A DNA stretch of 64,000 nucleotides from contig MU008179.1 in assembly GCA_010909165.1 (NCBI GenBank), positions 62,001 through 126,000 on the forward strand. The letters run 5' to 3'. This document shows positions 31,080 to 54,100 of this stretch, piece by piece; the first letter of the stretch is position 1, and each line of letters begins with the position of its first letter. The notes beneath the pieces were generated by a model. That model made no database searches. It was given only the letters and a program-made list of their open reading frames with translations, and was not told the DNA's origin. The DNA comes from Anthoceros angustus (lineage: Eukaryota > Plantae > Anthocerotophyta). The translations under genes were made by a program, and so were the position numbers.

Positions 31080-31830
31080 TCGACGGGAGTGAAATAACTA
31101 CTTGGACCATGGTCATTCCGATTGCATTGCGAACAATGGTCCTTGGTTGAAAAAGTATTCAACATTGTTACCACATATGCATTAACCATCCTTGGACCAT
31201 GGTCATTTCGATTGCATTGCGAACAATGGTCCTTGGTCATTGAAAAAGTATTCACACTGATATGCATTAACCATCCTTGGACCATGGTCATTTGGATTGC
31301 ATTGAACAATGGTCCTTGGATCTCGAAAAGGTATCATGTTGAACACATGGTATTCGATTGCATTGCGAACAATGGTCCTTGGATCTCGAAAAGTAGTCAA
31401 CACTTTCCACCACATATGCAAGAACCATCCTTGGACATGGTCATTTGCATTGAACAATGGTCCTTGGATCTCGAATAAGTAGTCAACACTTTCCACCACA
31501 TGCATTAACCATCCTTGGACCATGGTCATTTTCACTGCAAACCAACAACATCCATGGCCCATGGGCATCCGCAGTTGCCAAATTCGTCCTTGGGTCACGA
31601 ATTATCGTACAAATCGCCGCCTATATGCTATGGGGACATGTCATTTGCATTCGAACAATGCTCCTTGGATCTCGAATAAGTCAACACTTTCCACCACATG
31701 CATTAACCTTGGACCATGGTCTTTTCAACTCACAAACCAACAACATCCATGGCCCATGGGCATCCGCAGTTGCCAAATTCGTCCTTGGGTCACGAATTAT
31801 ATACATCGCCTATATGCAGTATGGGGACAT
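31080..31830. repeat. Nested, palindrome-rich minisatellite inside the CACTA element
   Basis: Recurrent CCTTGGACCATGGTCA, GAACAATGGTCCTTGG, ACACTTTCCACCACAT and CATCCATGGCCCATGGGCATCCG modules. Confidence 0.85.
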
Positions 31831-34800
31831 GCCAACTTCGAACAAAAGACGAGGTGTGTGCGGGACATGGCTGGGGCGAGCCATGACGCCGACACAGACA
31901 ACACCATTCACCCATGGGCATCCGAAAGCATGCGCCAAATTGTCCCGGCTAAATCTGGCTATATATGTGAAGCACGGGACATGGCGCAGCGGGTAGGTGG
32001 CATGTGCGCCGCAGCAGGGCGGCGTCTTTGGAGCCAGTGGCGCTTATCTCGCACACTTGACATGAAGGTAAAACCACGATTCGGACGTGATGTTCGTCCG
32101 TGTGGCATTGCATGTTGAGCGGGCCATGGCGGCATGAATGACCATACAACATCCTTGGCACATGGGCATCGAGCTTTGTTACCAATTTCGTCCTTGGGTC
32201 ACAGTATTGTACAATTGCGGGCTATATATGTGAAGCATGGGGACATGGGAGCTTCGTTCAAAGAGGTGGTCATGCGCCAAAGACGGCATGGGGCATGCCA
32301 TGCGGACACATGGGTATTCGGGAGGCATGGAGCGTCTTGCGGAAACATGGCATCTTTGTGGCAAGGAGCCGTGGCATGTCCTTTCGTTACGCCCTCCCTC
32401 CCTCCGTCACCACAAGGTTACCACCTTCGGAAAACCCATATCGTCCTTGGGTTGCACTCGGCTTGTCGCGGTTAGGTGCAGGCGTCGCGATTGGCGTGGT
32501 TCGGCTATGGTTTGGGACGTGGACTTGAAGATTTGGGCGGTGACGTTTAAGCCTACAACCCGCTACCATAACCCGTGACTTGGATGGCGATCGTGATGGT
32601 TGTGGAAAACAGAGGACGGAGGGCCCCTTCATTTTGCGGTCGAGGCGGTGAAGGTTTGGAAAATGGAGAGGGCGGCGGCCGTTTGGTCAAGTGGAATTGG
32701 ACAACGGCCTCGGGGCGGGTGCCAAAGCCGAGGAACCGAGGCAAGCGATGTGGGCGTGTCAGCCGCCTCTGCAGAGGCGGGAGTGGATGCGGGAGGGTCC
32801 TTCCGTGGAGCCGAATGGAGGCATGGAGGGGCTTGGGAGGGAGGAGTTGCGCAGCAATAGTGGAAGGTGTTGCCGATGAGGAGGAGGCGGCAACAAATCC
32901 TCCTCATTCCACGTCTTGTCTCCAAGAGGTGGGCGCTAACGGTGGAGCTTGTGGGTGCGAGGGGCGACTGCGCGAGACGGACTTTGAAAGGGCCCTCCAC
33001 GTTGAAAATGAAATTGCCCGAGGTGCGAGGCCGCGGGCCGTGGGCATGTGGAGGACGGAGGTCTTGCCGAGGACGCGCACCTCTGGATGGCGGGAGGGAG
33101 AATAGGGCTCTTCTAGAAGAGCTTATTTTTGGTGACCATGGAGGACTCAAGGAGCGGGCGGGAGGTCTTTCGAGGGCAGCAAAGTGCGGCCTTTGGAGTT
33201 GATATTGCTTGAGGCCAGGGGGAGGAGGAGGCCACGAAACACCACATGGGTCGAGAGGCCTGGGGACGAGGACACCACCGGCACGAGGATGGTGAAAGCG
33301 AGGGAGGCGGAGTGGAAAATGGCTGGTGAAGAGGTGGGCGAGGACCTACCGACAACATTGAGGAGAGATAGGGGGCGAAAAGTTGGCGGTAAGCCACTTG
33401 ACGACATCATTGCCGTGTTGTGCTGCATGGTCGTGGGGGTTTACATGGGCGTGAGCCGTGTGATGGAGGGTGGGTGGAGAATGAAGATGAGGAGGAAGAG
33501 CCCACCGACGAGGAGGGACTGGTCCGAAGGCCTTCCAGGCGTGTTGGAGCTAGTGATGAGGCTTGATGGTACCATGGTCCACGGCGAGACTTTGAGGGAC
33601 AGTTGGTGAGGAAGGTAGAGTACGAGTTCCCTAGTGTAGATCGCGAGGATATCGTGTCCGGGTTTGCGCGGACAAGAAACCTAGCGTTGGCAAGAAGGTG
33701 CGACTGCGGTTATTTGGAGGAGAAGGGAAAGATGCGAAATGGCTGCACCCTCGACGTCGGCACCAAGGCGTGGAGGCGGGTGGAGCAAGGTGGTAACGTT
33801 GCACAAGCACGGTGGTGTGTGGCCAACCCCACAACAAGCGGCCGCAACATTTCGACTTGCAAAGCACGAGCATGGGACCAATCCATTTGGTCCCATGGGA
33901 GCAAAAGAGTTCGAGAGAAGGTATGTTCAGCGGTGGGGAAGGAGCGCAGCAAAAGAGTTGAAATGGGCTGCGAAACATGGATTGGAGAGCATGCGGGACT
34001 CTGGAGTGGTATGGCGATAGATCGGGGCCTTGGTTGAATAGCTAGTGGTCAAAAAGTGCGCATGTAGGACATGAAGGCGTGAGCGATGGCGATGTGTGTG
34101 CATGGCTGCGGTCGGAAGGAGAAGGAAAATAATGTGCGGTGAAGGGCACGAAAGATGGAAGGAACCATAGCATGTCCCAGGGGAAGGGAAGGGAAGGTGG
34201 AAGAGGAGGCATCACACTCGTGATGTCGGAGGCGGTGGGGATGGTGTGGAAGGTGGAGGTGAGTGTGTTGCCACCCACAAGGCGAATCACAAGATCTCTC
34301 CAAAAGTGTGAGTTTGGTGGCAATGGCGGGGATGAATTGAATGCGGATCATTTTGCCTAATGTAACTTAACGGTGAATATATAGCCTATGGGGCCGGAGT
34401 GCAAGGCACGAGCGTGGAGGTTAGTGGCTCGAATGCCGGGCTCAAAGGGTCGACATGGCGGGAGAAAGCAGGCGGAGGTGCTAGGCCAAAAGGGTCGAGC
34501 AAAAGGCAGCTATTGAAGATGCAGAGGAGTCGACTCGGATGACGCCGAGTAGGTGCCCGACCATGTGGTATGTGCAAGTCCATGTCGGCAATAAGCACGG
34601 ATTGATTTGTCTTGTGGGCGCTCGTGGATTTTGATGCGTTCCTTTCTTGCGTTGTGCAAAGCGGAGCAACGGCAAATGAAACACGCACGAGCAAGCGCAT
34701 GCGAGGACATTCACAACCGCCATCGCACGTAACGTGGTGGTGGAGGTGAGGGCGATATGACAACACACGCTTGATTGGTAGTCGTCGAGGGGCGGGTCTG

Positions 34801-35140
34801 GTCGATCCGAGCGATGAAGGAGATCGGCCTCATAGCACGCCACACATGTGGAGCGGGCATTCCATAGTTACGTAGCGTTTACATTGTCCTTCGATATGTT
34901 TTAGCGTTGTGGAATGAACCCGAAAACTATGGCATATGTCTTGCAAGCCGCACATGTTCGTATTTGCGGAAGTCTAGATAGGGAAAACGCACAAATGGGG
35001 CGTTTGAAGAAAGCGTAATGCATGTGTGCATTTGGTGGTAAATGTGATGAGGTATTTATTAATCTATGAGGTGTATACTTATAACTATGGCATGGTTAGA
35101 TATCTATGAATTTGTACCTATACATAAAAGTATGTATTCA

Positions 35141-35165
35141 ATATATATATATATATATATATATA
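35141..35165. repeat. (AT)n microsatellite
   Basis: Read directly. Confidence 0.95.
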
Positions 35166-35975
35166 CGTGTTCATCATGTATGTAGGATTATACAATACAT
35201 CGGCCTCAACCGTATATATAAATGGACATATAAATAATGTAGAATCCTACTATACATAATTAGCGATAACAAGGGTTTGTTGTGTATATGGGGCTTGAAA
35301 AGAAAACCGGTGTGGACATAGGGTGCATTGAAGAGGGAAGATGGAAAGAGAATGATACCTGAGGAGAGATAGAGTTCTTGGTAATTGCTATGTAGGAAAA
35401 GCAAGAAGGCAAGAATAAAATACCGGTGGGAGAGGGAGCTCATTGTCACAATCATATGGCAACACAAAGAGGGAAACAATAAAGAAATGGGTGTCATCTG
35501 GAGCATTAACTAGGAGTGTGAGGTGAAAGGTGAGACCAAGAGCATGTTGTTAAGATGGTAAGAGAAAGTGGAAAACAAAATCACAAACTTAACACCAAAC
35601 CAACAAACTTGATGACAAGCTCTTAATGGCGAGGTGTAAGGTCAAGAGACCACTTGCATGTTGTTAAGATGGTGAGAGAAGGTGGAGGGAAAATCACAAA
35701 CTTAACACCAAGCCACCTAACTTTTGGGTGTACCACATGGAAAGTGTTACATGAAATTGTAACAAAGGACTATAACATAAGCAAGTTTTCATTGTATATG
35801 TTTGAAATCATAAACAATGCTAGCGAGAGGATGTTGTACTTAGGAGGAGAGGTGATGAGAGAGAGCCGGGTTCATGTTAAGATGGTGACATGAGAAGGGA
35901 ATAGTGTCAATCTTAATACCAAGCCTAAATAGCATGTTGCAATCTGGAAGTGTTACATGAAATTGCAATAAGGAC

Positions 35976-36003
35976 TGTAACATAGGCTGCCTTTTCTAGT
36001 AGG
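35976..36003 (-). repeat. Right TIR of the CACTA-type element
   Basis: TGTAACATAGGCTGCCTTTTCTAGTAGG, followed by AAC. Confidence 0.95.
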
Positions 36004-37792
36004 AACCGTCGGGTTGGTTTGTTGAGTTTTGTAGGTGTTCATCCATCGGTTTGAGCGATCATGACTCAGCACCACTTCCTGTCGGTCATTTACAGTGGCG
36101 CCTTGCACTCGGGTTCATGGCTAATTGGGTGTGATGAAGGGCTGTGAATTCCTTAATAATTTGCATGTCGATTGTTTCGCAATTTGTATACATATGTTTT
36201 TGAATACGAGGGGGCTAAAGCAGCTTAAGTGCACGCTTAAACAAAGTATCTGCAAAAACTTGTCGCAAAACAAAGCAAGTCAAACATATCATTCGAGGAA
36301 ATATGTCTTTTGGAGGTGCAGGGATGTGGCGGAAGCCCGACATAAGAAGTTGCACATATCGGCGGACGTCACATAGACACACCTCATCTATCTATCCTAT
36401 GCTCTAAAGCTACGAAGAACACCTATCACCTTTCTATCCTCTCGTGTTTAGTCTCCTTGACGATGACCTTGTCTTGGGATCATCATCAAACATGCCTTCA
36501 AAAGCACCGATGCTCTCGGTTCCGTTTCCTCTACGCGGGTTCTTGTTGCGATTAGTGTCTGGAAATCGGATGTCTATCATCATCGTGCTTGTCGTTCTCG
36601 CACTCTTATTTGGGATTTTCATCCGAATCAACATTTTCCTCCATTGCAACTCTCTCTGGAAATGGGTGGTCTTCACGATATCTTCAACCTATTAACTTCT
36701 TGCCGGTGGTAGATGTTGAAGTTAGCTTTGTCTTGATGAGCTCACGTATGCGGACTTGTAGAGTGCTATCCTTGCAAAGAGAACCCAGATGCCAAAATAA
36801 ATGTCTCCGATATCAACAGTCGATCCAGATGCTTTGGTCGCTTCCTCCGTTGTCGCAAACCCTCTCTATCACTGTTGTGTGGAGCCAATATCTCCTCTGG
36901 TAGGTACCTTCCCTCAAACGCATTGCTATTCTAACAAGGTCTCCTAAGAAGTAGAGACGGCTCCTCATCTCTAATTTTGAGGGTGTGAAAACGGGGGTTT
37001 GTTTTCGGAAAACCGTGTATTAGGCTCTTTTTAAAATTCTACTTAAAAATGATGTATGAAGAATGAAGAGTTTTCAAATGAAACCAGGTGCATTTCAAGG
37101 TTTGTTTACTAATTTTTCCTTTTTCCTCTATACTATATGACCTACCCTTAAAAACGCAAGATTTGAAGATAAATACCCGTGTAGGTTACGTTTGCACATT
37201 TCACACCAATAAGTTTCAATAAGCGTTCACATAAGCGCTCACATAATAAATAGGAAAGTGTTTAGCGTTCACATCGTAAATAGGAAAGTGGTGGGAAGCG
37301 ATTCAACAAATGAAACGACTACCCGGACATCCGGTCTGGCACTGCCGTTCGGAGTCAAAGGGTTTTGATTTAATATCCGGACACACGGTGCAAGCAGCTG
37401 CCTGCGGTATGATGCCTCGGTACGGTGCTTGAGCTAAATCGTGCCTTTCCCCTGCTGTGGGACATGGCGGTCGTCTGCATCATTAGCCGTTGAATAGCAC
37501 GAATGTGTTCTGTACACTAATCTTGGAAGGGGTTAATATACAAACCCCTTCCGCTGTAAAACCCCACAAAAAGAAAAGACCTTAGAAATGCAAAATACGA
37601 TTGAATCCTCGTCAAGCACCATGCTAAATCGAAAGGGAAAAAACATTGATATTTCACAATTCATAAAAACGAGGGCTTTCTTGGCGCTGGCAGCTCAATA
37701 TCCTTGCCCGCTATGCTTTGACACAAGTAATGAAAGAAAATCACGATATCATTTCAAAACCCCTCTTCCGTCCCTCGAATATAGTCTTTCCT

Positions 37793-38900
37793 CTACAAAG
37801 ATCCCTCAGGCGGACTGATCTGAGACTCATACTGCGCTTGGGTGGCTTCTGAATCTAAAACAACTGCCAGGTTGCGCATGCGTTCCAATTCTACTACATC
37901 GAAGCTGTCAGTCTCTGCCAGGGCCTTCGCTTCATCATCTTCTGCGTTGTCGCCTTCGTCCTTGTCGCCACCACTCCCAGACTGGCACACAGTATCCAGG
38001 GTTTGTTGTCCTTCCTCTAGCAAGTCCCCTGTTTGCGTTTTCATCCTCCTTGCACTAAGTGGAACCACCTGAGCTTTCGAACAATTTTTTTCGCTAATAC
38101 AAACTTCTTTAGCCCAGAATTGTGCTGCTCCTCTCCGGTGGGCCTCGAATGTGAGCTCCTCTTTCCAGTCTGGCAAAACCTCGAAACCATGTATGCGTTG
38201 TGGGATATAACCAGCACAGCGGAGGTCAGCCTCTATTGCAATAGAATTGCGTCGAGCAATCTTGCGGTGTTGTTGTCCCACTTCCTGCGCAACCATCCAG
38301 AATCCAATCTCCTTCTTTGGAGAATGTTTTGATGAATTTCATCATCAACCCGAGAGGTCTTTGGTAGGCACACCACCATTTTGTCTTGAGACATGTACAC
38401 CTTCTTCACCACGGATCATGTGCAATCACGGATCGTCCATTGTTAAAAGTCCCTGCGTAATATTGGGCGTCATAGCCGCCTGTCTTGTTGCCTTCCTTCA
38501 CACACCAAGCAATTATGTACTCCACTCTCAAATCCACCCCTCATTACTCATGTTTGTTTTGTCCCAAACGAAGGACACCATTCCACCCTTGCCACATAAT
38601 CCACGCATGCACTCTCTCACAAGGTGAGCTTCTTCCACTCCGTGCATGACAATGAGCACAATTCTTCCCGTCGTCTTCTCCGAAGCTTTGGAAAAGCATG
38701 TTCATCATGCACCGCATCCAACCGACTATCCATAGGACCAATGTCAAAGCCTCTTGGGACATCCATAACGGAAGGGTATAAGCCGCGACAAGGAATCCCG
38801 CATCTCCATAATGTTTCTTTTTCCACTTGATAGTAACACTCTTTCTCGGACCACGGAGCGGTGAACAAGTGCGGTCGTCTTTCAAATCCTTGTCGTGATT
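37793..38900 (-). pseudogene. Beta-class (permuted) N6-adenine/N4-cytosine DNA methyltransferase domain (N6_N4_Mtase-like) with an acidic C-terminal tail; frameshifted as assembled
   Basis: One open frame from 38366 reads YQRPLGLMMKFIKTFSKEGDWILDGCAGSGTT (ILDGCAGSGTT at 38303-38271). After a 1-nt shift it continues RNSIAIEADLRCAGYIPQRI. This matches the consensus HP.qKP..L...li...s..gd.vLDpF.GSGTT..aa....R..iGiE.d..y......Rl. Upstream, in the expected order, are LIVMHG, EYMLLGVKEG (E.il.f.K) and a motif-IV-like L(V)FTAPW at 38865-38851, about 150 codons before the HP/QRP motif. Confidence 0.8.
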
Positions 38901-39686
38901 GCAGCTGCTCATCCTCAAGACTCTTCCGTTGTTAATCTCAAATATGAAGTTCTTGAAATCCTCGGCAGCTTTTGCAAATTCTCCACATCCTTTATTTCTT
39001 TGAGCGAAAGAAAAACGTTAGGCGAGGACACCACATTCCTATTGTATTCAAACAAGCGGTGGCGATGGCGAAGGAGGGTGTGAAAGGCGCACCCGGCGCC
39101 CGCCCACCCTCCATCGACAATTTTGAGCAGCATGCCCGCAGGCGGCCGGCGGCGCGCCGGCGACCCATCAGCGGCGGGCGGGCGAGCGAAGCGGCACATG
39201 GCGCCGGCGGCCGGCGCCCGTGCGACTGCGCATCCAAATAGTGGGAGGCGCGGCACGCGCCCTCCCCACTATCGTGCCATTTCTCGACAGAGCGTGGCGG
39301 GCGCGCCAGCGCCGCCTCGCAAACGAAACCAAAGCGACTCATTATGTGGTGACGGATCTCACCTTCCCAAAAAAGCCGTTTGAAACGAGCAATCATGTCT
39401 CCGTTGAGTGTAGAGGATATTCCTTCCTCACTTCCTCGAAGATGAGCACTCCGGATGTTTAGCCATGGCCACTTGAATAACATGCGGTTTCTTTCTTGAA
39501 GTAATTTCGTCCTCCATTCCTTTGAGATCGAGGATGCCTGTCGGTACCTTCCTGCGTGACAAGAATCTGCGCCCATTCACCATTGGTATACCGAATGATT
39601 TCCGTGGTTTTGAACATGTCTTCGGCTTGAAATACCGTTTCCACGTGTTTGGGATCATCTGTGACTTTCCTTTTCCCTTCCCTTTC

Positions 39687-41028
39687 TTCTTTGGAGAATG
39701 TTTTGATGAATTTCATCATGAGAGGTCTTTGGTGCGGGCACACCACCATTTTGTCTTGAGACATGTACACCTTCTTCACCACGGTATCATGTGCAATCAC
39801 GGATCGTCCATTGTTAAAAGTCCCTGCGTAATATTGGGCGTCATAGCCGCCTTGTTTGCCTTCCTTCACACCAAGCAACATGTACTCCTTGTCTCAAATC
39901 CACCCCATTACTCATGTTTGTTTTGTCCCAAAGGACACCATTCCACCCTTGCCACATAATCCACGCATGCACTCTCTCACAAGGTGAGCTTCTTCCACTC
40001 CGTGCATGACAATGAGCACAATTCTTCCCGTCTTCTTCTCGAAGCTTTGGAAGCTGTGTTCATCATGCGCATCCGACTATCCATAGGACCAATGTCAAAG
40101 CCTCTTGGGACATCCATAACGGAAGGGTATAAGCCCATGAAGAGAATCCCGCATCTCCATAATGTTTCTTTTTCCACTTGATAGTAACACTCTTTCTCGG
40201 ACCACAGGCGGTGAACAAGTGCGATCTCTTTCAAATCCTTGTCGGCGATTGCCTGCTCATCCTCAAGACTCTTCCGGTTAATCTCAAATATGAAGTTCTT
40301 GAAATCCTCCGGCTTTTGCAAATTCTCCACATCCTTTATTTCTTTGAGCCAGAAAGAAAAACGTTAGGCGAGGACACCACATTCCTATTGTATTCAAACA
40401 AGCGGTGGCGATGGCGAAGGAGGTGTGAAAAGGCCGACCGGCGCCTTCACCCTCCATCGACAAATTTGCGAGGCACCGCGATGCCCGCAGGCGCGGCGGC
40501 GGCGCCCGCCGGTGCGGCGAGGGGCGACGAGCGAACCGCGCCCGGCGGCGGCGCCGTGACATGTGCGAACTGCGCATCCGTAGTGGGGGGGCGGCGGCGC
40601 TCCACTATCGTGCCATTCTCTCAGGCAGGGGCGTGGCGGGCGCCAGCGGCGCGCCTGAATGCGAAACCAAAGCGACTCATTGTCGGTGGTGACGGATCTC
40701 ACCTTCCCAAAAGCCGTTTGAAATCGAGCAATCATGTCGTCAGATTGAGTGTAGAGGATATTCCTTCCTCACTTCCTCGAAGATGAGCACTCCGGATGTT
40801 TAGCCATGGCCACTTGAATAACATGCGTTTCTTTCTTGAAGTAATTTCGTCCTCCATTCCTTTGAGATCGAGGATGCACATCGTACCTTCCTGGTGACAA
40901 GAATCTGCCACATTCACCCATTGGTATACCGGAATGATTTCCGGGGTTTGCATGTCTTCGGCTTGAAATACCTTTGTTTCCACGTGTTTGGGATCATCTG
41001 ACTTTCCTTTTCCCTTCCCTTTCTTTGG
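39687..41028 (-). pseudogene. Tandem duplicate of 38313-39694 (pre-MTase domain plus catalytic half of the MTase, lacking the SAM-binding motif)
   Basis: ORF 39459-39881 (MLLGVKEG...VCPHQRPLMMKFIKTFSKE) stops short of GDWILDGCAGSGTT and jumps at TTCTTTGG (39687-39694). Confidence 0.85.
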
Positions 41029-41199
41029 TGCCGGTATGTGCCTATACACTCTGGTAACTTTGCTTCCCACTTTGAAAAGATCTTATCAATATTATCCCAT
41101 ACCTTGCCCTCCGCGAGATGCACGATGTGTGTCCACTTATCCACTTTGTTACCTTGTACACGCGTCATCTTGGCCTTCATCATCTTCAATTAATCCAAG

Positions 41200-41660
41200 A
41201 ACCTTATAAAGATTGAACTTCCATGACATGGTCATGACTCCATCCCGCCGCAATAAGAAGCTCATCTCGTAAATATCTTACATTCAATAAAAGACATTTT
41301 CTTCCGCTTATCGGACATTGTGTTATGGATGGGTTGCAAGAACTCTCATCTCGTGCACCGTAAGCCCACGTATACATGCGCTTCAACATATTGAAAGCAG
41401 GACTTCCGGAGCAATATCGCCAAGTGCTTCATAGCGACATATGTGTGGTTCCCCAAGTACACCCATAATATATTTCTTGGCAATTTACGATCCAACTTGC
41501 TAATATCGTTGCACTCCCGGTCAATCATGCATGTGCGAGAACCCCTTCTTCAATCCTTCCTTGAATAACTCGGGCTAGGTAGTTTGACCATGCCTCGTCC
41601 ACCCTCGATTTGGGCATCGGTGTAATAAAGATCTGGCTTCAAATTCTCAAGCTTTACCGA
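41200..41660 (-). pseudogene. ParB/Sulfiredoxin-like domain, N-terminal to the MTase on the same strand
   Basis: Across frameshifts: VKLENLKP...RVDEAWSNYLARVI...YLGNHTYVAMKHL...FQYVEAHVYVGL...EFLQPIHNTMSDKRKKMSFIE. This fits the ParB/Srx pattern i.l..L.p....R..d..v..L...i / .GnHr..A...l / ..vy.gl...e......N. Confidence 0.5.
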
Positions 41661-41699
41661 TCGTCTCGAACAACTTTCTTTGGCATAGGCGAGTCCCCG

Positions 41700-43478
41700 A
41701 TTATTGTCAATGGGTCGATTCCGGATGGCATCTTCAAGTCTTTCCTCATCTGTCACATGGGGCTCGCTATATCTGGTGGGCTTCACTCACTGTTTCCTTC
41801 CTGGATTTCTTCTTTCTCTTCCCCAGTGGAGCCTCGCTATGCGGTATGCCACATTAGGCGTGCCCACCATGCCTTGCTCTCCCACTCGAGTCCCTGTCTC
41901 CATACTCTCGGATCGGCGGACAGAGGTGCCTCAATAGAAGCTCGCACTCGCCCGCCCACCGCCACACCGTCTCTTCCACAATTGCAGTCGCAATCAGGCG
42001 GCCGGCCGGCGCAACCCTTCGATGTGCCTTGGGAACCCGAAACGGTTGGGGTGCGGTCGGTCTCCGGCCTCTACCGCGAGGCGCGGCCGGCCGGCGCCTC
42101 CTCCTCGAGATACCGAACAGGTACCTCCATGGAGGAGGAAAAGGAATGTCCAGACGGAGCATCCTTCCATCCTCTCGCCTCCCGAAAGTCGCCGTCGGAG
42201 TGGCCAAGGCGTCGGGTATACACCCATCCTCCTCATCGGATGGGCCGAGCTCACTAGCCTGCGCTCGGGTGAGCCCGTCATGCACATTCGCCGGCTCGAC
42301 TCGTCGTTGTGACATTTCCCTCCTATCTTTGGATGACGGATTCGGTAATCTTCCGCATATGGTCGTAATTAGTGCTCTAGCTTCGAGCATCGCAAAAAGA
42401 AAAAGTTGAGGAAAGGCAAGATAGAAGGCACAAGTCATGGAAACCAACATACAACGATTTGCATCAACGCCTTGAAAACCTTATTCCAAAGTTTTACTTA
42501 CGGTTGGGTACGCATAGCATTTAAAATCCTCCACGTTTGAAGGATCGCACTTGCTTTGGAAGCCATGTAGGTGACCTCATAAGCCTTGTACATGGTTTCA
42601 TCTTCGCTTATCCGATCAAATACCAAAGGCTTTGTTGTGCATGATCAAAACACAGCTCTCGTCCATCCATATCCGATGCCCATAGAACCCGGCCACTTGC
42701 TCTGGTTTGGCAAGGCCCCTTGAACCCTCGACCCACGGTTTCAATAGAGTCCAAAATTGTTCTCCTCCAAGGCTCCTCATCCTGTGTCAACATCCGGTCC
42801 TTCTCGGCGAGCAGTGGCCTCCACCTTGCTCCCCAACGCCGTGGCAGTATCCTCATAGTTAAATGGCGTTGGAATAGGCGCGCGATTGCTGTGGGGTCTC
42901 TTCCTCGGTCTCCTCCTGCAGCCTTCTCCTTCGTTGTCTTGGCCTTCCCGGATGTTAGCTGCCCGATTTCCCATGCCCAATTGACAAATTACCTCCGCTG
43001 GTGCTTGATGGCTGGTTGTATGCGCCCTCCACCGGGAGGTAGGCGTGCCTTCTCCAACATCCACACCGAAATTCACGCCGCATCCTTCTTCTTCTCTGGG
43101 CGGGATTTCTTGGTTTTGGGCATCGGGTCGGGATGTTGCCTCGTTCTCCACGTTCCTTCCTACTTTGCCTTCCGCCATCCTCAAGAGATTAGATACAATC
43201 GCCATAGGAAGCCAGTATTCAAAGAAGGAATCGTCACAAAGGAAATTTGCGGAGGAAGGGGAGGGCCATACCAAGACTATGTGAATCGCGAAGAGGAAAT
43301 GGCGGAGGATCGCAGCGTGGAGAAGTCGCGTCTTTGGGAGGCAGCGCCAAAAGTCCTTCCGAGAGGCTGTCTTGGCCGCCACGCCGTCCGTCAGGCTGGA
43401 AGAACTTGCTCGCCTCTCGGTTACTCTCCACCCGAAAGTATGGCGCCGTCGGGTCACGTCATACACATGTGCTGGCAA
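41700..43478 (-). pseudogene. Probable N-terminal part of the ParB-MTase gene; no recognised domain
   Basis: Minus-strand coding-like fragments (ORFs 42777-43478, 42608-42856, 41854-42450; FDRISEDETMYKAYEVTYMASKASAILQTWRILNAM) continue colinearly toward the ParB-like segment. Confidence 0.3.
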
Positions 43479-44299
43479 CCCTAACCATAAATGTGAATTA
43501 AGGTAATGCTTACATGGAAAACCATTTATAGGACCCTAAGTCAAAAGCCGTACATGTGAACCCCAATGCCGAGAAAACAATGAAGAGGCGGTGTGCCGCG
43601 CAGCCGCCAAGATCTACCGGTGAAGATCTTTCGGTTTATTTGCTCATAATGGCATTTCCACCTTACCTTCAGTCCACGGTCGCCTATGTCATGTCATACC
43701 ACGCTCTGTGAAGAGTGAGGACCATATTTCCAGACGATAGAGGTGCGGAGTCCTCAGGCCGGCGACAATGTTGCGCGCCACACACACATCAGTTGTCGAA
43801 GAGGTCAGAGTTTTTCGTCCACAAAGTTCATTCCGCACTTCGTTTGTGCGATCAAGGGGAACATGTACTTGAGAACAAGTGTTGGGTTTGCATCGATCTC
43901 ACCGTCTCTGTTGATCCATGTAATGACGACATTGATGTTGTCGCGAGAGCAGTGTGAGGAAGAGGGGTCTTTTGATTTCCGGATGGTAGGTGACTCTCTT
44001 GTGAGGAGAGGATGGTCTCGATGGGGCCCCGCGGCCTTCCGATCATGAGCAAGCGAGTCCGAACTCCAGGTTAGTTTGCCTTCAACAAGAAAGCAGCTTG
44101 TTTGCGGTGAAGACAATGTTGTGGCGAATAGTCCACCCCATCCGTGGATTCCATCTCATGCACACCGCGCAGTAGTATTGCGGTAATGCTCGTCGCCATC
44201 GACAAGCTCTCCGGCATTCGCGTGGGGTGCCCATGACCCCGTGAACTTGAACTTATATGCGCCATTGATGGGAATCATCGCGAAGACACCGGAAGGAAG

Positions 44300-47030
44300 G
44301 GAGATGGGGTGCGTTGGTGGTTTGTTCCGCCAAGGGCGATGTGCGAGGATGACCGCGGTGAGTTCTTCCACAAGCAAATGATCCGTGGTGAGGATGGGGA
44401 TGATGACTTTGTTCACCCTCCTCCTGGTGCATCTGGAACATTCCATCCCAAGCCTTTAAGTGAGACATTGATGACAACAAAGCTTTTCGGACAAGCGCGC
44501 GGCGCGGGGGTGTCTTTGCAAAAATGTGAATGGAGAAGGTGACGGAGACTTTCTTAAACCGTGTTGCAACCAAATGTGCATGCAGAGGTTGACCAAGCAA
44601 GGCCTTCGAGAGCAACGATATAGGTTCCTCACAATGTGCGAGCAAGAGAGACATTTCTTCAAAGCCTCGTACATCGGGACCCGAGTCAAACTAACAAAGA
44701 AAGAGTTTTTACGCATGTTATGGGATCGGTTCCTCTGCTGCGTGAAGGCCTTAAGAGTATATTGTATGGGGCTACGATCGAGGAATCGAAAGGGAGGGTC
44801 ATGAGGAATGCCCGTGGGATAGTGTTCGAACCAACCCAATTCATAAGTCCCGTCATGCACTTGGTGCTCTAGCGTGGATGGATAATGCTTTTACATTCAT
44901 GGTGAAAGACTTCGACGTGCAGTGTATAACGACACCCTACAAAGCGGAGATATGGTCATTGTACAACGGCGTGTCAAAAGCGCTCGTTTGAGTCGCGTGG
45001 TTTTGAAGTTATGGAAATCTAACTGTGAAGATTCCCAAATCCAACAGTTCTCGACACGCTCAATATGTGGTTAAAGACCACCATTCGAATACAACTCGGA
45101 AGGTTGATCAAGGTAGATATCACTCTACCACTAGTACAACCCATCTGGTGGGAGGAGTTTTTCGAGTTCATCCCATAGTTCGCGAATGAGCGGTGGTATG
45201 CGGATGGTTGGCTGACGGTGGCGCCGGCCGCACCCTCGGATGACCGTTGCGGTTGCTGAGTACCATGTTTGAAACTCGCAGTCCTTGTTCATGGATGGCC
45301 CCGGTTGTAGGTTTGATTGGTCGAGTTTGTGGGGCCCCCCCGGCCTGCCGGCGCCCCATCCACCTTCAAACTCGCCAACCATAATATATGACCTAGAAGG
45401 TGGACGTTTTGTAGATTTTAGATTGGGGAAGATGGTAAATGTATGTGTGAAGAGGTGATAGTCCACGACATCGGTTTGTTGTATGCAATGGGTTTCATGG
45501 ATTCATCTTCGCTTGTGGTGTGGAAGAAGCGTGTTTGTATGTGTGAAATTGGGAGCGTGAAAACTTGGAAGGATGTGACACTTGGAGCGTGTTTGGCGTG
45601 GCGAAAAAATGTCGGCGTTAGAGGCACGTCTGCTGCGAGGAGCGGGAAAAATGGCAAAACACCGTGAAAAGAGTTCTGAGGAACCGGATAAGTACATGCT
45701 CCTCGCTATAGGCGGAATGGACAAGAAGACCGAGATTCCACACTTTCTGCGTTGGCCAAAGAATCTTGATGAGGATGCCGTGTATCTGCGTAGTGGGTTG
45801 CATGATCCACAATTATACGTCTGTGCAAGAGTGTTTTTACTATGCCAATTTGAGGAACGATCGAATCGACAATCGTGATTATTCAAGATGTTATTCTTAA
45901 TTATAAAGGAGTGCTACCCAAAGTGCTCTATTTGCAGCTTGACAACACTTGCCGGAAAACAAGAACCAGCTGTTGTTTGTATTTGAACATGCTAGTTGAT
46001 ATGGGAACTTTTCAAGGTGAAGGTTGGGTTCCTCCTTGTTGGGCACACTCACGACCAAATCGACCAAATGTTCTCTTGCTTTTCCAAAAGCTTGAAGCAC
46101 AAGGAGGCACACACTCTTCCGCGTTGGCCGACATCTTGGTTCATGCATACACGCCTACCGGAGATCAAAGTTTTGCGGAGGTCCGGACTTGGGTCATATG
46201 TATGGCCGATTAGACAAGGCGATGGTCGCGAGCATATTCATCGGTGAGAAAATTGAACAACTTATCTTTCCAGCGCAGTTTAAAATCACGGAGAAGACAA
46301 ACCCTGGTAGGTGGTAGCGATGAGAGCAAGCAATATTCGACATCGATGTATTGGGAAACCGAAGCCGGGTTGGAGTTTTGAAATTTGTCCCTCAACGACA
46401 TACGTTGTGTCGGCCCTCGTCGAGACAAGAAAGGACGTCGGGGTTATCTCCGAAGGAAGTTTGAGGCGGAGTCAGCCGGGCTGCGGCCATATGTGAGACG
46501 AGAATATGGATGGTGGGAAGCATTACAGGTGGACCAAGAAGAAATCGCAATAATCGTGGAGAACAACATTGGGCTCGCACTAGAAGTGGAAATGGTTCTC
46601 TCGGGAATCGGAAGAAAGCAGCGCCACTCCAAGTTCCCGATGAAGCTATCCTAGAGGAGGCGTTAAGAGAACTCCCCAACGGATATGTACTTGGGGCCTT
46701 ACCGAGTTGGGAAGGCGCAGCAGGAAATGGCACGCTTGCATGGAGATGTAAAAGACATAAAGGAAGGGATGTTCATCGCAGATTTTGTACCGATACGCAT
46801 AATCGCCTTTCGGATTGGGAAAGTTAATCGTGAGGTTGGATGTGGAAGAGCCTCATTTCCGTTCACTGCACAGATCGAGCACAGATGCATATGAAGGCGA
46901 CGTGGAAGAATATGTGATTCCAGACCCATCCACTGAGACAGCTGGGATTGGAAGGAAAAAGGGTGGGAAGGCAAATTTCCCGAAGAATGTTCAAGAAGTC
47001 TTCATCAATAAAACTGTCATCTTGTATTAG
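44300..47030 (+). pseudogene. RNase H-fold DDD-type transposase of the DGMD / LDN..RENKN / GHTH.DIDQ.FS type (Sola1-like, DUF7869-like by recollection), frameshifted
   Basis: N-terminal CC..C....L...R..F (44560-44640); HLERV...KYMLLAIGGMD...IPHFLRWPK (45580-45770; first Asp reads as Gly at 45711); LPKVLYLQLDNTC-RENKN (45915-45970); VKVGFLLVGHTHDQIDQMFS (46015-46076); C-terminal GMFIA...IGKV (46765-46825). Confidence 0.85.
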
Positions 47031-47399
47031 GGTCTATGCACGCTTAGGTGCATCACTTCCATCCAATATTGGGAGTGATAACTTGCTTAGTACATGGTGG
47101 TAAAAACGGGGTTTTTTTTTAATCCGTTTCACATAGGCCTTCAAATATTTCGGTTTCGGGTGTAGCTGTGGTCCGTGGGTTTAGTTGTGGCTTACGCGCT
47201 TGCTTTTGTGGAAGTGGAGCGCGAGATAAAGGTGAGGTTGCCTGTGTTTGTGTGTGGGGTTTGGTCCGAAGTAGATGGGGGAATGCACGTGTGAGAATGG
47301 GGAAGTTGATGGTGGTGTTGGAGAATGGCGGGGTTCGTAGTGATGTGGGGAGTGTGGTTTTGCGGGCAGGTGGGAGGCATGCTATGGCTATGTGGGAGG

Positions 47400-50300
47400 C
47401 GGTGATGGGAGGAGGTAGGAGGGTTTAGGTGGGAGGAGGTGGGGAGGATGAAGGTGTGGAGGAGGTGGGATGGCGCCGTGGGAGGCGGTGGAGGTGTTGG
47501 AAGACGGGCGGCGGCTTAGGGTTGACTCACTACATGTGATGTGGACATGTCCTTGCGGACTTTGGCTCAGAATGGATCTGGACCGCCGAGGTGGAGCGAT
47601 TCCTGCCTCGCTGCCGAGTCCGCCCCTCGCAGCCCTCGTGGCTCCCATCTTTTCCGCCGCAATGGCAGTGGCTCGCGACAACAAGGGCCGCAGGGTGACA
47701 TGGCCAGCGGCTGCTCACACCTTCCAAAGATCCATTGCTCAAACGTCTGAACATACGCCGCCTCTGTGGTGAATTGGGAGGAGCCATAGTGGCGCCCGGT
47801 GTGGGAGGCGGTGGAGGTGTTGGAAAGGCAGCGGCGGCTTAGGGTTGACCTCGCTCACGGGACGAGGACATGTCCCTTGCGGACTTTGGCCGCTTTGTAT
47901 GGATCTGGCCGAGGTGGAGCAGGCTTCCTTTGCCTCAGCGTCGAGTCCCGGCCCCTCGCAGCCCTCGTGCTCTGTCCCATCTTTTCCCTTGTGTGGTGGC
48001 TGCGACAATGGCCGTGTGTGACGGCGGCAGTAGCGGCGTTCGCCACCTTCCGGCATCCGCTCGTCTGAACATCTGATTATCCTCTTCTTGAATTGGGAGG
48101 AGCCATAGTGGCGGTCCGTGGCGTAGAGCAAGTCTGGGTTTTGGCTTTTGTTGGGGAGTGACCACCATGTATGTGGTGGAAGTGGACTGGCCGATCGGGT
48201 TGATTGGACTTTTTCTTTTGCATTGCCAACTTGTATGGATCCTCACTCTCTCGCCTGATGGACTCATGAGGGCATGAAGGCTCGCCTTCCTGTTGTGCCT
48301 CCCTAACTCCACGAGGACTCACTTTGGCGTAGAGGCTCCCAGGCTCGGTACAGTCTTGGCGTGAAGATCGCAAGTGGATTGACGAGAGCTGAAATGGGTC
48401 CCCTCTCGAGGGAGCCATGATCATGGCGGAGGTGCAGGTTTTGGCCCCTGGGGAGTGGTAAGATTTACCGTGCTGGGCGCCGAATGATGTGGGAGCCGTG
48501 TGTGACGGCAGTGACGTTCGCCACCTTCCGACATCCAGTTCAGCGTCATCAGTGAACATCTGATTCGCCCCTCTTCTTGAATTAGGGAGCCATAGTGGCG
48601 GTCCAGTGGCGTGAAACGAGTCTGGGTTTTGGCTTTTGTTGAGTGGCCAGGCCTCACGGATGTGGTGGAAGTGGACTCGTCTTGATCGGGTTGATTGGAC
48701 TTTTTTTGCGGCTTGCCAACATGGATCCGTCTCTACGCCCGATGGACTCATGAGGGCACGAAGGTTCCTTCGCCTTCACGTGTTGTGCTCTCTAACTCCA
48801 CGAGGACTCACTTTGGCGTAGAGGCTCCCAGGCTCGGTACAGTCTTGGCGTGAAGATCGGTCACGAGGATTGGCGAGAAGCAAATGGGTCCCTCTTACGG
48901 AGGTCGGCCCTCTGAGATCATGGGCGGTGAGGTGCACGGCCTTATCGGTCCCTCGGGGAGTGGCAAAGCAGTCTGGTGGAGCCGGATGTGGGAGCCGCTG
49001 CCATGTTTTCGATGGCTTGACGCCACACAATTGGATGTGATCCGCTGGGACGGGGTGGCATGTTGTTCCGACCGCCTGCTTGATGGTGCGAAGGCGGCGA
49101 AATGCACGTTGCATGGAGATGTAAAAGACATAAAGGAAGGGATGTTCATCGCGTACCTTGTACCGGATCGCATAATCGGCCTTTGGATTGGGAAAGTTAA
49201 TCGGTGAGGTTGGATGTGGAAGAGCCTCATTTCACAGTTCAATGCATGACACCACAGATGCATATGAGCGGATATTGGAAGAATATGATTCGGACCCATC
49301 CGAGGCAATTTGGGATTGGAAGGAAAAGGGTGGGAAGGCAAATTTCGAAGAATGTTCAAGAAGTCTTCATCAATAAAAGCGTCATCTTGTATTAGGGTCT
49401 ATGCACGCTTGGGTGCATCACTTCCATCAATATTAGGATGATAACTTGCATAGTATGGTAATTAGTAAGGGTTTTGTCCGTTTCATAGGCCTTCAAATAT
49501 CTTGGTTTGGTGTAATGGTCCGTGGGTTTAGTTGTGGCTTCTGGCCTTTTTTTGTGGAAGTGGGCCTTGAGATAAAATGAGTTACTGTGTTTGTGTGTAG
49601 GGTTTGGTCCGAAGTAGATGGGGAATGCACGTGTGAGAATGGGGAAGTTGATGGTGGTGTTGGAGAATGGCGGGGTTCGTAGTGATGTGGGAGGCGAGCG
49701 GGGTTTTGCGGCGGTGTGGGAGGCATGCTTTGCGGCGATGTGGGAAGGCGGTGATGTGGGAGGAGGTAGGAGGGTTTAGGGTGGGAGGAGGTGGGGAGGA
49801 TGAAGGTGTGGGAGGAGGTGGGATGGCGCCCGGTGTGGGAGGCGGTGGAGGTGTTGGAAAAGGCGGCGGCTTGAGGTTGACCTCGCTCACGGGGCAGGAC
49901 ATGTCCCTTGCGGACTTTGGCCCTTTGTATTCTGGGTGGCCGAGGTGGGCAGGCGGGCTTCCTTTGCCTCATGGCGTCAGTCCAGCCCCTCGCAGCCTCG
50001 TGCTCTGTCCCATCTTTTCCCTTGGCAGTGGTGGCACTGCGACAGTAGCGGCCGTGTGTGACGGCAGTGACGTTCGCCACCTTCCGACATCCAGTTCAGC
50101 GTCATCAGTGAACATCTGATTCGCCCCTCTTCTTGAATTAGGGAGCCATAGTGGCGGTCCAGTGGCGTGAAACGAGTCTGGGTTTTGGCTTTTGTTGAGT
50201 GGCCAGGCCTCACGGATGTGGTGGAAGTGGACTCGTCTTGATCGGGTTGATTGGACTTTTTTTGCGGCTTGCCAACATGGATCCGTCTCTACGCCCGATG

Positions 50301-50560
50301 GACTCATGAGGGCACGAAGGTTCCTTCGCCTTCACGTGTTGTGCTCTCTAACTCCACGAGGACTCACTTTGGCGTAGAGGCTCCCAGGCTCGGTACAGTC
50401 TTGGCGTGAAGATCGGTCACGAGGATTGGCGAGAAGCAAATGGGTCCCTCTTACGGAGGTCGGCCCTCTGAGATCATGGGCGGTGAGGTGCACGGCCTTA
50501 TCGGTCCCTCGGGGAGTGGCAAAGCAGTCTGGTGGAGCCGGATGTGGGAGCCGCTGCCAT
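47400..50560. repeat. Modular repeat zone including a tandem duplication of the transposase 3' end and downstream DNA
   Basis: 46730-47400 recurs at 49105-49870. 48490-48990 is near-identical to 50050-50550 (offset 1556). GAATT(G/A)GG(G)AG(G)AGCCATAGTGGCG occurs at ~47772, 48090, 48580 and 50136, with a variant at 51010. Confidence 0.85.
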
Positions 50561-50939
50561 GTTTTCGATGGAAGCAGCGTCACACAATTGGATGTGATCC
50601 GATTGCGTCGGCAGGTGGGCATGTTGTTCAAAAGCGACTGCTGTTTGATGGTCTGGCACGGCAAGCACCTTTGAGTTACGCTGCTGTTCACGACTTGATT
50701 TGTTCCAACAACCATCACCGAGATGACATGCTAACGCGGGGATGGACAACATCAGACGCCCAGCTTTGAGAGGCCTCCATTGTCATTGCTTGCATGTATG
50801 AAACAAACGGCTTGTGCACTGACACCGCCACCATTGATTTCTGCACATGGTGATGGTAACGTGATGCGCATGATTGGGCTAATCATGTCCTGCTTTGGTT
50901 TTGTGTTGTAGAGTGAAGGCCACAGAATCATGGAGTGGA

Positions 50940-51170
50940 GGCCTTTGGGACGATGCTGCTTGGGACGATGCAGCGTTTGGGACGATGCTGTGGTGGCTCT
51001 CTTGTGTGAATTGGGAGGAGCCAGAGTGGCAATATGGAAGTTGGGTGTGCTGGGGTTTGAGGTGTGTTGGAGGTGTGCTGGGGTTGGAGGTGTGCCGGAG
51101 TTGGAGGTGTGCCGGAGTTTGTGTGCCAATGGTGGAGGTGTGCAGGAGTCTGAGGTGTGCTGGAGTGTGA
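50940..51170. repeat. Low-complexity short tandem repeats (GGGACGATGC; GGAGGTGTGC)
   Basis: Read directly. Confidence 0.8.
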
Positions 51171-54100
51171 GTTGCTGGAGTCATGGTCCTCCTTGTGGTG
51201 GATCGGGTTGAGACCGCCGATGTGGTGGCTTTATCGAGATGGACTCACACAGCCCGGGATGGACCTCTTTATTGGAGAGAAAGAAGTGACAGCTGAAGGG
51301 ATGTTGGTGGTTGCTGGAGAGAAGGGAGGAAAGATGGAAGGATGTTTTCTCGTTATGGTTGTTTTCGCCATGGATTTGATCCAATCCATCCGGTAGCTCG
51401 CGCTTAACTCGCTTTTCGCTGCAGCAGTTGGCGCAGTTAACAATATGGTTGACTTTGAAGAGGAGCTTGAGTTTGTTTCGAGGAAGGCGCTAAGAAGCCG
51501 GAGGTGCGTGAAAGGACCGAACATGTCAAGAAGTTGCAAGGAAAGCCTCGAATGTCTGGACCGAAAGAAGAAGATGGCACACCGGGCCGGGTTTCAACGT
51601 TAGGGACATTTCATACAATCGATATTCGAAAGATCTTATTGGGGTGACGAGTTCATCGTTAGGTGTTTGGGCCGATAGCGGGAAGAATGAAGGATTCAAG
51701 TGGTCTCAAACGTGTTGCAAGTTGCAAGGTGATTTCAGCGAGTGGGAAAGCATTGATGATTTGTGTTATGTGTGTAAAGCGCCCTCGAGGGAAGAAGTTC
51801 ATTCCTCGGAAGATGGCACTTGGAGTGCGTGGAGAAGTTGAAAGGTGTTTCCATTGATGGTTCACTTATGACAAGACAACGAAGGCACTTCAAGGGGTGT
51901 GGTTCAAGAGCGTAAAAAAAAAAGAAGATGCGTGCGAGGATGTTGTGGAGGACAACTAAGTTGAGGTACATATGTTTGTGGATGGCGGCGCGTAAGGGAC
52001 CTTCCGCGAGGAGAGTATTAGCCGGACACGCCTCATGCTCGAGAGTCCAAGGTGCTAGCCTCTTCAGAGAGTGATTCAGCAAATGAAGCCCATCCGGGAG
52101 GAAGAGCTTGAAACAAAGCAGCCATGGTGGAAACCACGCGACCAAAGATCCGTGGAGTCAACTTCTCATGATGAGGTTGCACTAATTCATACACGGATGA
52201 TAAATGTGGGGTGTGTGGCTCGAGAGCAAGTCTAGGACTTGGCCTATGTTTAGACGTCTGGCACCTTCCGGAAGGTTCTCTAGAGGATCTTGTAGTTGTT
52301 ACAGAAAGGTGTGAAGCATAAAGAGAAAGTTCTCTTGAGGTCTGTGAGGAAGTTGATGTCAAAAAGGGTTGGGCGAACTGGCCTTGAGAAGTATATGAGA
52401 GTCAACAACTCAAGAAGTGAAGACAACCAAGATTAGTTCTTTGGAGAAAAGGGAGGAGAGCTTGGTGTCTCGAATCTTGCCACTGGCGCAGGACGCTAAG
52501 GAGTCTGTGGAGATATGGAGAAAAGGGGTGGCAGCATGAGCAAGACATAGCGGCACACCGTGAACTATCTTCCTTGATGAGGCGACCAACAGGGCCTCTT
52601 TGGCCACCAGCTTGGATTGAAGCCCCGCTTGACTGTAGAGGTCCTCGGGAGTTGAAGCTGAATGCTTGTCCCTTATGTACCAGGTATGTTGCGTGATGAA
52701 GTTTGGCTGTCACCTCTTTCTTATCAATGGTCTGAATCCTAATTTTGGATAAATGCATAGTACACCATGTATACAGAATGTGCCGCAGTACGCATCGTGC
52801 TCGCAGACATTGCTTTGTTGTGCTACCTTTTTATGGTGTCGCATCGTGGTGGTCATGTGGATGGTGGTGATGGACCGAGTCGTGGTTCTATGATAGTGCC
52901 TGCTCAAGTGGATGGTGCTGCCAGGGCCACTAGCCGCCGTGGTTCGTGATAGTGCAGGTGCTCCAAGTGGATGGTGCTCAAGTGAGGTGGTAGTTATGGT
53001 GTCGATTATGGTGCTTTGGAGCACCTTCCACGTGATAGTGATAATTATGGAGCTGACCGGTTATGGTGTTGACCACCTTCCACCGCACCGCGGGAGTGCG
53101 TCATGGTGCCGCTTTGTAGTGGTCTAGGTTGAAGTGGATGCTTAATCAAGTGCATGTGGGTGAAGTAGAAGCGACCACTTGAAGTGGCCTTGTGTGTGGT
53201 ATGGGGCACATAACTTTTCATTCCTTCCTTGTGGACACTCCTACCACGACTTTTGCCTCTACCAAGATTTGAGGGAGAGCGCTCGTGCTTGCTCTTGTGG
53301 CTTAGAGGTTCCCGCACATGGTTGATGGCAAAGGTTGGGCTTCTAGTGCTACGTGTGTCATCTAACATGGTGAAGACCGGAAGCAGCTTGGAGGAGGTGC
53401 TGAATTTTATGACACTATTGTAGTTTTAGGCGGACTAGGAAGTCGGTGAGAGTGCGGTTCTTTGATGTTGCCAACACATCGCACGCAGGCATCACCAAAG
53501 GATGTTCTTCCCTACGGTTTTCGCCATTTCGGCGGCTCGACACACCAGGAACAGGGACACCGGGTGCACGCCAAGATCTCGGATTGCGATTCAGTTGAGC
53601 AGCCCGCCTCAGAAAAGTGGTGGCCAATTTGTGGCCTGGGGGAAATCGACTGACCATGTGTCCAATTAATCAAGAAGTAGTGATGGTGGAGCAGACTCCA
53701 TCTGATCAGATGATGTATGTGGGCAACCAAGAAAGGGCCACAGTGGGGGAGACTACGGCAACGCAGTTGCCGGTGAGCCCAGAGGTATTGGCTATTGGCG
53801 AGAAGGCGGTGGTGGATATGATGGCCGTTTTAGGAGGTATACACCATATGGAGAATCGCAATGATGGAGCATCGTGGAACATGTGGGTGATCAGAAGGCG
53901 CCAAAGATCCGGGTTGTGCCAAGGAGGAACAACCAGCCTCGAGCCCAAAGAATCCAAACTGGTGGTTGCACTTGAGGGGCCACATGAGCTATCCAAACCG
54001 GGTGGTTGCACTTGAGGGGGTCACATGAGTCGTCACAACCTCTCGGACCTAGCCGGTGTCCCGTGCACCATCACAATCTCAATGTAAATCGGGGACATAA

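Follow-up and report, generated by a model that had tools for sequence, protein, structure and literature searches.

The minus strand of a 64-kb window of Anthoceros angustus DNA (the window being the whole stretch analysed, 64,000 nucleotides (nt) of contig MU008179.1) holds, between positions 37793 and 41790, the remains of a prokaryote-type DNA methyltransferase (MTase) gene. Here, an S-adenosylmethionine (AdoMet)-binding block of MTase identity stands in a sequence that is broken by frame changes and stop codons, is truncated in one copy by an internal duplication, belongs to a multi-copy repeat and lies near a transposase remnant. We regard it as probable that this is a decayed pseudogene of a phage- or plasmid-type amino-MTase of the PF01555 family (beta-class, permuted), one copy of a repeat that was most likely the cargo of a cut-and-paste DNA transposon with a broken DUF7869 transposase. 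The original prediction for this locus had described a gene that joins a ParB domain to a beta-class MTase; the MTase part stands, as PF01555-type sequence in eukaryotic, transposon-rich DNA, and the ParB part, which gives neither a profile nor a tblastn signal, does not. Throughout, copy 1 is the 3' unit of the duplication and copy 2 the 5' unit.

Methyltransferase identity and candidate catalytic motif

The strongest evidence comes from a single block, YQRPLGLMMKFIKTFSKEGDWILDGCAGSGTT (38271–38366), in which the AdoMet-binding motif I (D.F.GSGTT) follows the (T)QKP helix block. It matches the N6_N4_Mtase family PF01555 with an E value of 2.3e-4 and 21.6 bits over profile positions 170–195 of 221, three PHROG DNA-methyltransferase families (phrog_67, 6.2e-8; phrog_18293, 1.3e-7; phrog_3008, 2.5e-7) and the CcrM model of NCBIfam (6.5e-3). 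Being a fragment, this best piece stays below the PF01555 gathering cut-off of 26.7 bits and, with no match in the other pieces, the whole-domain threshold is not reached, as one would expect of a pseudogene in fragments. We also built a profile hidden Markov model from 121 phage Dam-like enzymes and ran it on the 2594 stop-to-stop pieces of the window, among which the motif-I block is the sole significant match (1.3e-8). By tblastn, the same block finds phage and plasmid genes for ‘adenine-specific’ or ‘site-specific’ DNA methyltransferases, at 49–65% identity over 31–45 residues. It is the only statistically secure MTase segment: the remaining pieces returned nothing significant from Pfam, PHROGs, NCBIfam, PDB or hhalign, the open reading frames (ORFs) of 194, 157 and 128 amino acids (aa) had no significant hhalign match to a 24-sequence methyltransferase alignment, PDB sequence searches with pieces other than motif I gave chance matches only, and the Atlas look-alikes of two MTase pieces were uninformative.

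For the rest of the domain, we used our own local profile-to-DNA aligner, which allows frameshifts, and used tiles of actual sequence from the window as the null; in an anchored version of the test, the motif-I segment is fixed and the true upstream DNA is swapped for other tiles (profile of 245 columns). Unanchored, the best upstream block is SFVWDKTNMS (16.7 bits, roughly the 95th percentile of the null), and each block other than motif I falls within the null range when scored singly. Anchored, copy 2 scores 41.1 bits from VMDVPRG to ...FSKE (columns 27–196) against a null maximum of 40.3, so that none of 528 constructs reaches its score, and copy 1 scores 70.9 bits over columns 27–238 against a null of 62.9 ± 4.05, a value reached by 24 of 504. 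Under stricter penalties, the score of copy 2 drops to 25.1 bits, which 5 of the 528 null constructs attain. Downstream of motif I, the alignment crosses one frame change into IAIEADLRCAGYIPQRIH and continues to column 238 of 245, which lifts the score from 48.2 to 51.2 bits; the post-motif-I block RNSIAIEADLRCAGYIPQRI is not significant by itself.

These alignments modestly support a catalytic domain that would be collinear throughout, in the order DVPRG ... GRIVLIVMHG ... VWDK ... EY..L..KEG ... GGYDAQYY ... QRP..GDWILDGCAGSGTT (GSGTT) ... RNSIAIEAD; the support is modest because lenient penalties are needed and the two copies are not independent. All the peptides quoted in the original prediction were located on the minus strand, each in its place, and the block order it had read fits a permuted (beta-class) enzyme. 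A second degenerate MTase-like domain (‘region A’, 39391–39670 and 40730–40938, minus strand) was considered and dropped, its score being reached by 2–34 of 340 null tiles depending on copy and penalties. The sequence of region A (IIRYTNGEWAQILVTQEG..., MLFKWPWLNIRSAHLRG) weakly resembles columns 33–111 of the same MTase profile, as an older degenerate second domain or by chance.

The nearest recognisable kin are orphan phage and plasmid beta-class Dam-like MTases with the motif DLPYG, namely those of Enterobacter phage Phc (QYU38217.1) and Synechococcus phage ACG-2014f (AIX44018.1) and the Enterococcus, Bacillus cytotoxicus and Burkholderia plasmid enzymes. The QKP...EGD.(I/V)LD..(M/A)GSGTT block is 49–65% identical to theirs, and weaker blocks recur in the same order and spacing (D.P.G, G.IVL, VWDK, E..L.F and R.fIGIE) across a domain of roughly 220–250 aa, which hints, weakly, at kinship beyond the motif-I block. 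Unlike these enzymes, the copy described here is eukaryotic and decayed, its DVPRG candidate is without the aromatic residue, and it is accompanied by roughly 1.5 kb of extra, unexplained same-strand sequence upstream and by a long acidic tail downstream.

A canonical motif IV, (D/N/S)PP(Y/F/W), is absent from the coding strand within the gene. The aligner pairs VMDVPRG with the lcDLPYG of the phage relatives; the two copies agree in every residue of VMDVPRG, which precedes GRIVLIVMHG by 33 aa, and in the Phc enzyme DLPYG precedes the equivalent strand by 29 aa. As its own score of 10.3 bits equals the null median, VMDVPRG is a candidate and not a finding. It is also non-canonical, with R in place of the aromatic residue. 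Measured against the (D/N/S)PP(Y/F/W) expectation, an arginine for the aromatic residue makes activity doubtful. LFTAPW, which had been proposed as motif IV, is unlikely to be the catalytic motif: it precedes GRIVLIVMHG by 67 aa, compared to roughly 29 aa in relatives, reads LVHRLW or TCSPPVV in copy 2 and has no profile support.

Judged by its sequence, the ancestral enzyme would have come from the DLPYG family of orphan phage and plasmid Dam-like MTases and, if active, would have made N6-methyladenine (6mA) rather than N4-methylcytosine (4mC), since D is the first residue of the motif-IV candidate and the nearest relatives carry adenine-specific annotations. The same two features, together with the TSPPY of the Marchantia enzyme MpDN4MT1, speak against the 4mC activity that had been suggested.

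Duplication and decay of a multi-copy gene

The internal duplication that the original reading allowed for is real in the assembly, where nine collinear repeat families (D1–D9) with spacings of 1338–1371 nt define a tandem duplication of roughly 1.35 kb whose two units align at 91% identity with 38 gap events. At the junction, the ...FIKTFSKE of the upstream copy joins the start of unit 1 at the microhomology CCAAAGAA, so that copy 2 is without the end of motif I. The GC-rich blocks of the two units (39050–39330 and 40400–40680) are roughly 66% identical (161 matches versus 83 substitutions over alignment columns 440–700) compared to roughly 95% in their flanks, and the block lies inside the 194-aa ORF, which has no family match. 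This divergence and the 1–2-nt indels between the copies may reflect noise in the assembly or mutation of an unusual kind.

In three-frame translation, no fewer than five frame changes and several stops interrupt the segment 38190–38830, and stops or frame changes follow each other every 40–130 nt; because the frame changes lie within conserved blocks and the frames overlap, they are not introns. DKEYML...FSKE is a single continuous frame in copy 2 (39687–39893), where copy 1 has two private shifts. An exhaustive phmmer search of 1.84 billion representative proteins with the 140-aa ORF of copy 2 returned 0 matches, and a word-index protein search with it found nothing. Searches of metagenome and viral (IMG/VR) contigs gave no loci related to a 69-aa in-frame piece, an exact 23-nt DNA pattern had no match in metagenome contigs, and a search for RNA runs listed none. 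The gene at 37793–41790 is dead: a locus so often broken by frame changes and stops cannot yield an enzyme, and nothing functional remains. The proposed writer of 6mA or 4mC is therefore not to be found in this copy, given its many frame changes and stops, the duplication that truncates motif I in one copy, the absence of RNA runs from the listing and the lack of any protein match among the 1.84 billion representatives.

A small, independent public DNA run (X1), whose contigs we compared over 37000–42500, places the locus in a repeat family. Over these 5.5 kb there are 237 variant X1 contigs, and the summed word depth reaches 100–380 over 37.9–38.5 kb and 41.0–41.8 kb, so that these two segments are a multi-copy repeat in that organism. 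X1 contigs lack 1 nt at 38085, and the majority lack 1 nt at 38284, which destroys GSGTT. The contigs carry their own, different indels; frames are not restored, and contig record 8 still has stops. One contig joins 39162 to 40623 and represents a form without the duplication. The idea that the X1 consensus restores the frame at 38284 was rejected, as the rebuilt sequence loses GSGTT and the X1 contigs carry breaks of their own.

The upstream segment (41100–41790) is where a ParB-like domain had been placed. The 67-aa piece with GNHTYVA (41349–41549) and its neighbours have no match to ParB (PF02195) or any other Pfam family even at E ≤ 10, the same pieces have no PHROG, NCBIfam or phage tblastn match, and the ParB box expression G.HR..A finds no match, the arginine of the box being absent. 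With the X1 majority indels applied, 41100–41790 gives no clean ORF, and we could assign it neither a coding frame nor a domain. The segment also differs from phage and plasmid ParB–methyltransferase fusions in that the putative motif is not adjacent to the MTase body but lies roughly 1.3 kb of unexplained sequence away. On these sequence comparisons, ParB is not supported for the copy at 37793–41790; intact sister copies may differ. The ‘AP2 locus’ with which the segment had been said to be contiguous has no counterpart either, there being no AP2 signature in the window.

Transposon context and competing explanations

On the strand opposite to the MTase, two pieces in different frames match PF25273 (DUF7869) at 45875–46247 (E values 2.1e-14 and 9.5e-6), with the DDD-type transposase blocks GGMDKKTEIPHF, LYLQLDN and GFLLVGHTHDQIDQMFS. 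The Atlas look-alike clusters listed for this pseudogene are all eukaryotic (rotifers, arthropods and sponges). Between its first recognisable ORF (45582) and the upstream end of the MTase-strand repeat (~41790) lie roughly 3.8 kb. A broken MTase copy beside a broken eukaryotic transposase gene, in a sequence that belongs to a repeat family, indicates that mobile elements probably carried such a gene in this genome, and this copy cannot methylate. In the scenario we favour, an MTase gene of prokaryotic or phage type would have entered a eukaryotic genome, travelled as cargo of a DUF7869 DNA transposon, where it perhaps marked the DNA of the element or of the host, and multiplied as part of the repeat, of which the copy at 37793–41790 would be a decayed and internally duplicated member.

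Several points weigh against this scenario. No convincing pair of terminal inverted repeats (TIRs) or target-site duplication was found round the MTase and the transposase (34000–54000 searched), so we infer from adjacency only that both belong to one element, of which this copy may be truncated. The upstream extension of the MTase domain is modestly significant and hinges on lenient gap and frameshift penalties, copy 1 shows no extension at all under stricter ones, and the motif-IV candidate DVPRG is not significant alone. X1 may be a related sample and not the sequenced individual, and its library type is unstated. With the GC-rich block set aside, 28 indel events, mostly of 1–2 nt, distinguish the two copies, compared to 54 substitutions, a pattern that resembles sequencing or assembly noise more than ordinary decay, so that some of the frameshifts may be artefacts.

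Carried to its end, this last point would mean that the organism itself has an unbroken gene and that noisy long reads, assembled across a repeat, introduced the frameshifts, scrambled the GC-rich block and perhaps created the tandem duplication, as the contrast in identity between the GC-rich block and its flanks and the duplication-free X1 contig would also allow. However, the X1 contigs bring differing indels of their own, restore no frame, lose GSGTT at 38284 and, in record 8, still contain stops; many indels lie outside homopolymers, and the protein libraries searched hold no protein of this MTase family. Given both the indel-rich pattern and the failure of the X1 indels to restore frames, we keep an assembly artefact as a rival, albeit an unlikely one. 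Somewhat less likely still is that the MTase descends from an endogenised large DNA virus (a chlorovirus-like nucleocytoplasmic large DNA virus, a virophage or a Polinton-like element) or from another cargo element and had no part in a DUF7869 transposon. Chloroviruses encode many PF01555 methyltransferases (PMC7248222), and no TIR links the MTase to the transposase, but we saw no viral hallmark gene in the pieces scanned, and a search of IMG/VR gave no relative.

It is very improbable that we are looking at a functional, intron-containing host gene, acquired horizontally and writing 6mA or 4mC. The MTase blocks do stand in the correct order on one strand and are followed by a 167-aa open tail after motif I, but frame changes 40–130 nt apart, within conserved blocks and with overlapping frames, are not what introns leave, motif I is truncated by the duplication, and neither an RNA run nor a database protein came to light. 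That the contig is chimeric, or the segment a contaminant from bacteria or phages, seems scarcely credible: phages and plasmids do supply the nearest recognisable relatives of motif I, but at an identity of only ~50–65% over 31–45 aa, and the gene shows heavy decay and an internal duplication, has eukaryote-type transposase remnants on its flanks and no intact bacterial ORFs nearby, and is a multi-copy repeat in X1.

The decayed, probably transposon-borne beta-class amino-MTase is of interest for its family and not for this locus, which is inert; its value lies in marking the family and in cautioning that the loop for catalysis, DVPRG, may depart from the canonical form. PF01555 amino-methyltransferases are, to our knowledge, very rare in eukaryotes, and the two studied cases, N4CMT and MpDN4MT1, each broke new ground in eukaryotic epigenetics. 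In the present case, a PF01555-type gene entered a plant-lineage genome and multiplied there as part of a repeat, probably a DNA transposon, which suggests a route for prokaryotic MTases into and through eukaryotic genomes that parallels the retrotransposons with C5-type DNA methyltransferases (C5-DNMTs).

Bdelloid N4CMT is a single-copy, intron-bearing and expressed host gene, is fused to a chromodomain and writes 4mC (PMC8885841). Both it and the gene described here are permuted PF01555 amino-MTases of bacterial or phage origin in a eukaryotic genome, whereas ours is one dead copy among many, associated with a transposon, and its motif-IV candidate is of the D type; we found no chromodomain. 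Marchantia MpDN4MT1a/b, with TSPPY, are highly expressed in sperm and make 4mC (bioRxiv 10.1101/2021.02.12.428880). Like N4CMT, MpDN4MT1 is a PF01555 enzyme encoded by a single host gene. They share with our locus a prokaryote-type beta-class amino-MTase in a streptophyte, and differ from it, compared by description, in that it is a pseudogene without SPPY. Mobile elements with a DNA MTase gene, in many copies of which many are inactive, are known from the C5-DNMTs of Symbiodinium LINE/DIRS and Klebsormidium Gypsy elements (PMC5890265), the inactive PCIF1-derived MTase domain of DIRS1 retrotransposons and the Dam copies near Trichomonas transposons (PMC4738411). Whereas those are C5-DNMTs or group-2 and group-3 amino-MTases, mostly in retrotransposons, the MTase here is of PF01555 group 1 (permuted) and lies by the transposase of a DUF7869 DNA transposon. 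Among the papers searched, we found no report of a PF01555 gene tied to a DNA transposon in a plant-lineage genome. Tentatively, and with less expectation than for the pseudogene itself, we propose an unreported streptophyte DNA-transposon family with a phage-derived beta-class MTase and a D-(V/L)-P-R-G loop, whose intact members might be expressed and either write 6mA or bind DNA and leave it unmethylated, marking or shielding the transposon DNA. If true, it would be the DNA-transposon counterpart of the DNMT-carrying retrotransposons.

Feature coordinates and neighbouring sequence

Table 1 Features of the MTase locus and transposase remnants, in window coordinates
Feature	Position	Strand	Basis or remark
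AdoMet-binding block (QRP...EGDWILDGCAGSGTT; full YQRPLGLMMKFIKTFSKEGDWILDGCAGSGTT)	38271–38366	-	Profile and tblastn matches
Post-motif-I block RNSIAIEADLRCAGYIPQRI, counterpart of R.fIGiE...A..Ri	38192–38251	-	One frame off motif I
C-terminal tail to stop codon, acidic, frame uncertain	37793–38191	-	ORF 37793–38296
Copy 1 MTase body: DVPRG, GRIVLIVMHG, SFVWDKTNMS, VEYIIAWCVKEG, GGYDAQYYAGTFNNGRSVIAHD	38369–38830	-	Three-frame translation
VMDVPRG, candidate motif IV	38749–38769 (copy 1), 40100–40120 (copy 2)	-	Aligned to lcDLPYG of phage relatives
GRIVLIVMHG	38639–38668 (copy 1), 39999–40028 (copy 2)	-	
(K)EYMLLGVKEG (copy 2); counterpart VEYIIAWCVKEG (copy 1)	39858–39890 (copy 2), 38490–38525 (copy 1)	-	
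LFTAPW	38851–38868	-	
Duplicate unit 1 (3' unit)	38340–39740	-	Repeat families and pairwise alignment
Duplicate unit 2 (5' unit); MTase body 39684–40120	39710–41100	-	Repeat families and pairwise alignment
GC-rich block in unit 1 (twin in unit 2: 40400–40680)	39050–39330	-	Pairwise alignment
Upstream segment with GNHTYVA (41433–41453)	41100–41790	-	
DUF7869-type (DDD-like) transposase pseudogene, frameshifted	45582–46247	+	PF25273
Transposase_21 (tnp2/CACTA-type) remnant	25918–26490	-	E 1.5e-5

The C-terminal tail has no family match in Pfam, PHROG, NCBIfam or PDB, a protein search with the Transposase_21 remnant found no relatives, and the largest ORFs of the window have no family match. Elsewhere in the window, an unrelated repeat array occupies 19000–25500 (plus strand), with repeated units in which the ORF text YHLTFNKIGLKSCE recurs and with YINPPHITLSGRGG on the other strand. 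Two stretches, 13900–18300 (plus strand) and 47000–51000, consist of strongly skewed, proline-rich low-complexity sequence with long overlapping ORFs in several frames, internal repeats (for example, 48077–48751 versus 49969–50307) and no Pfam match. Tandem repeat arrays with periods of 85–195 nt and TRF scores of 286–628 fill 31101–31800.

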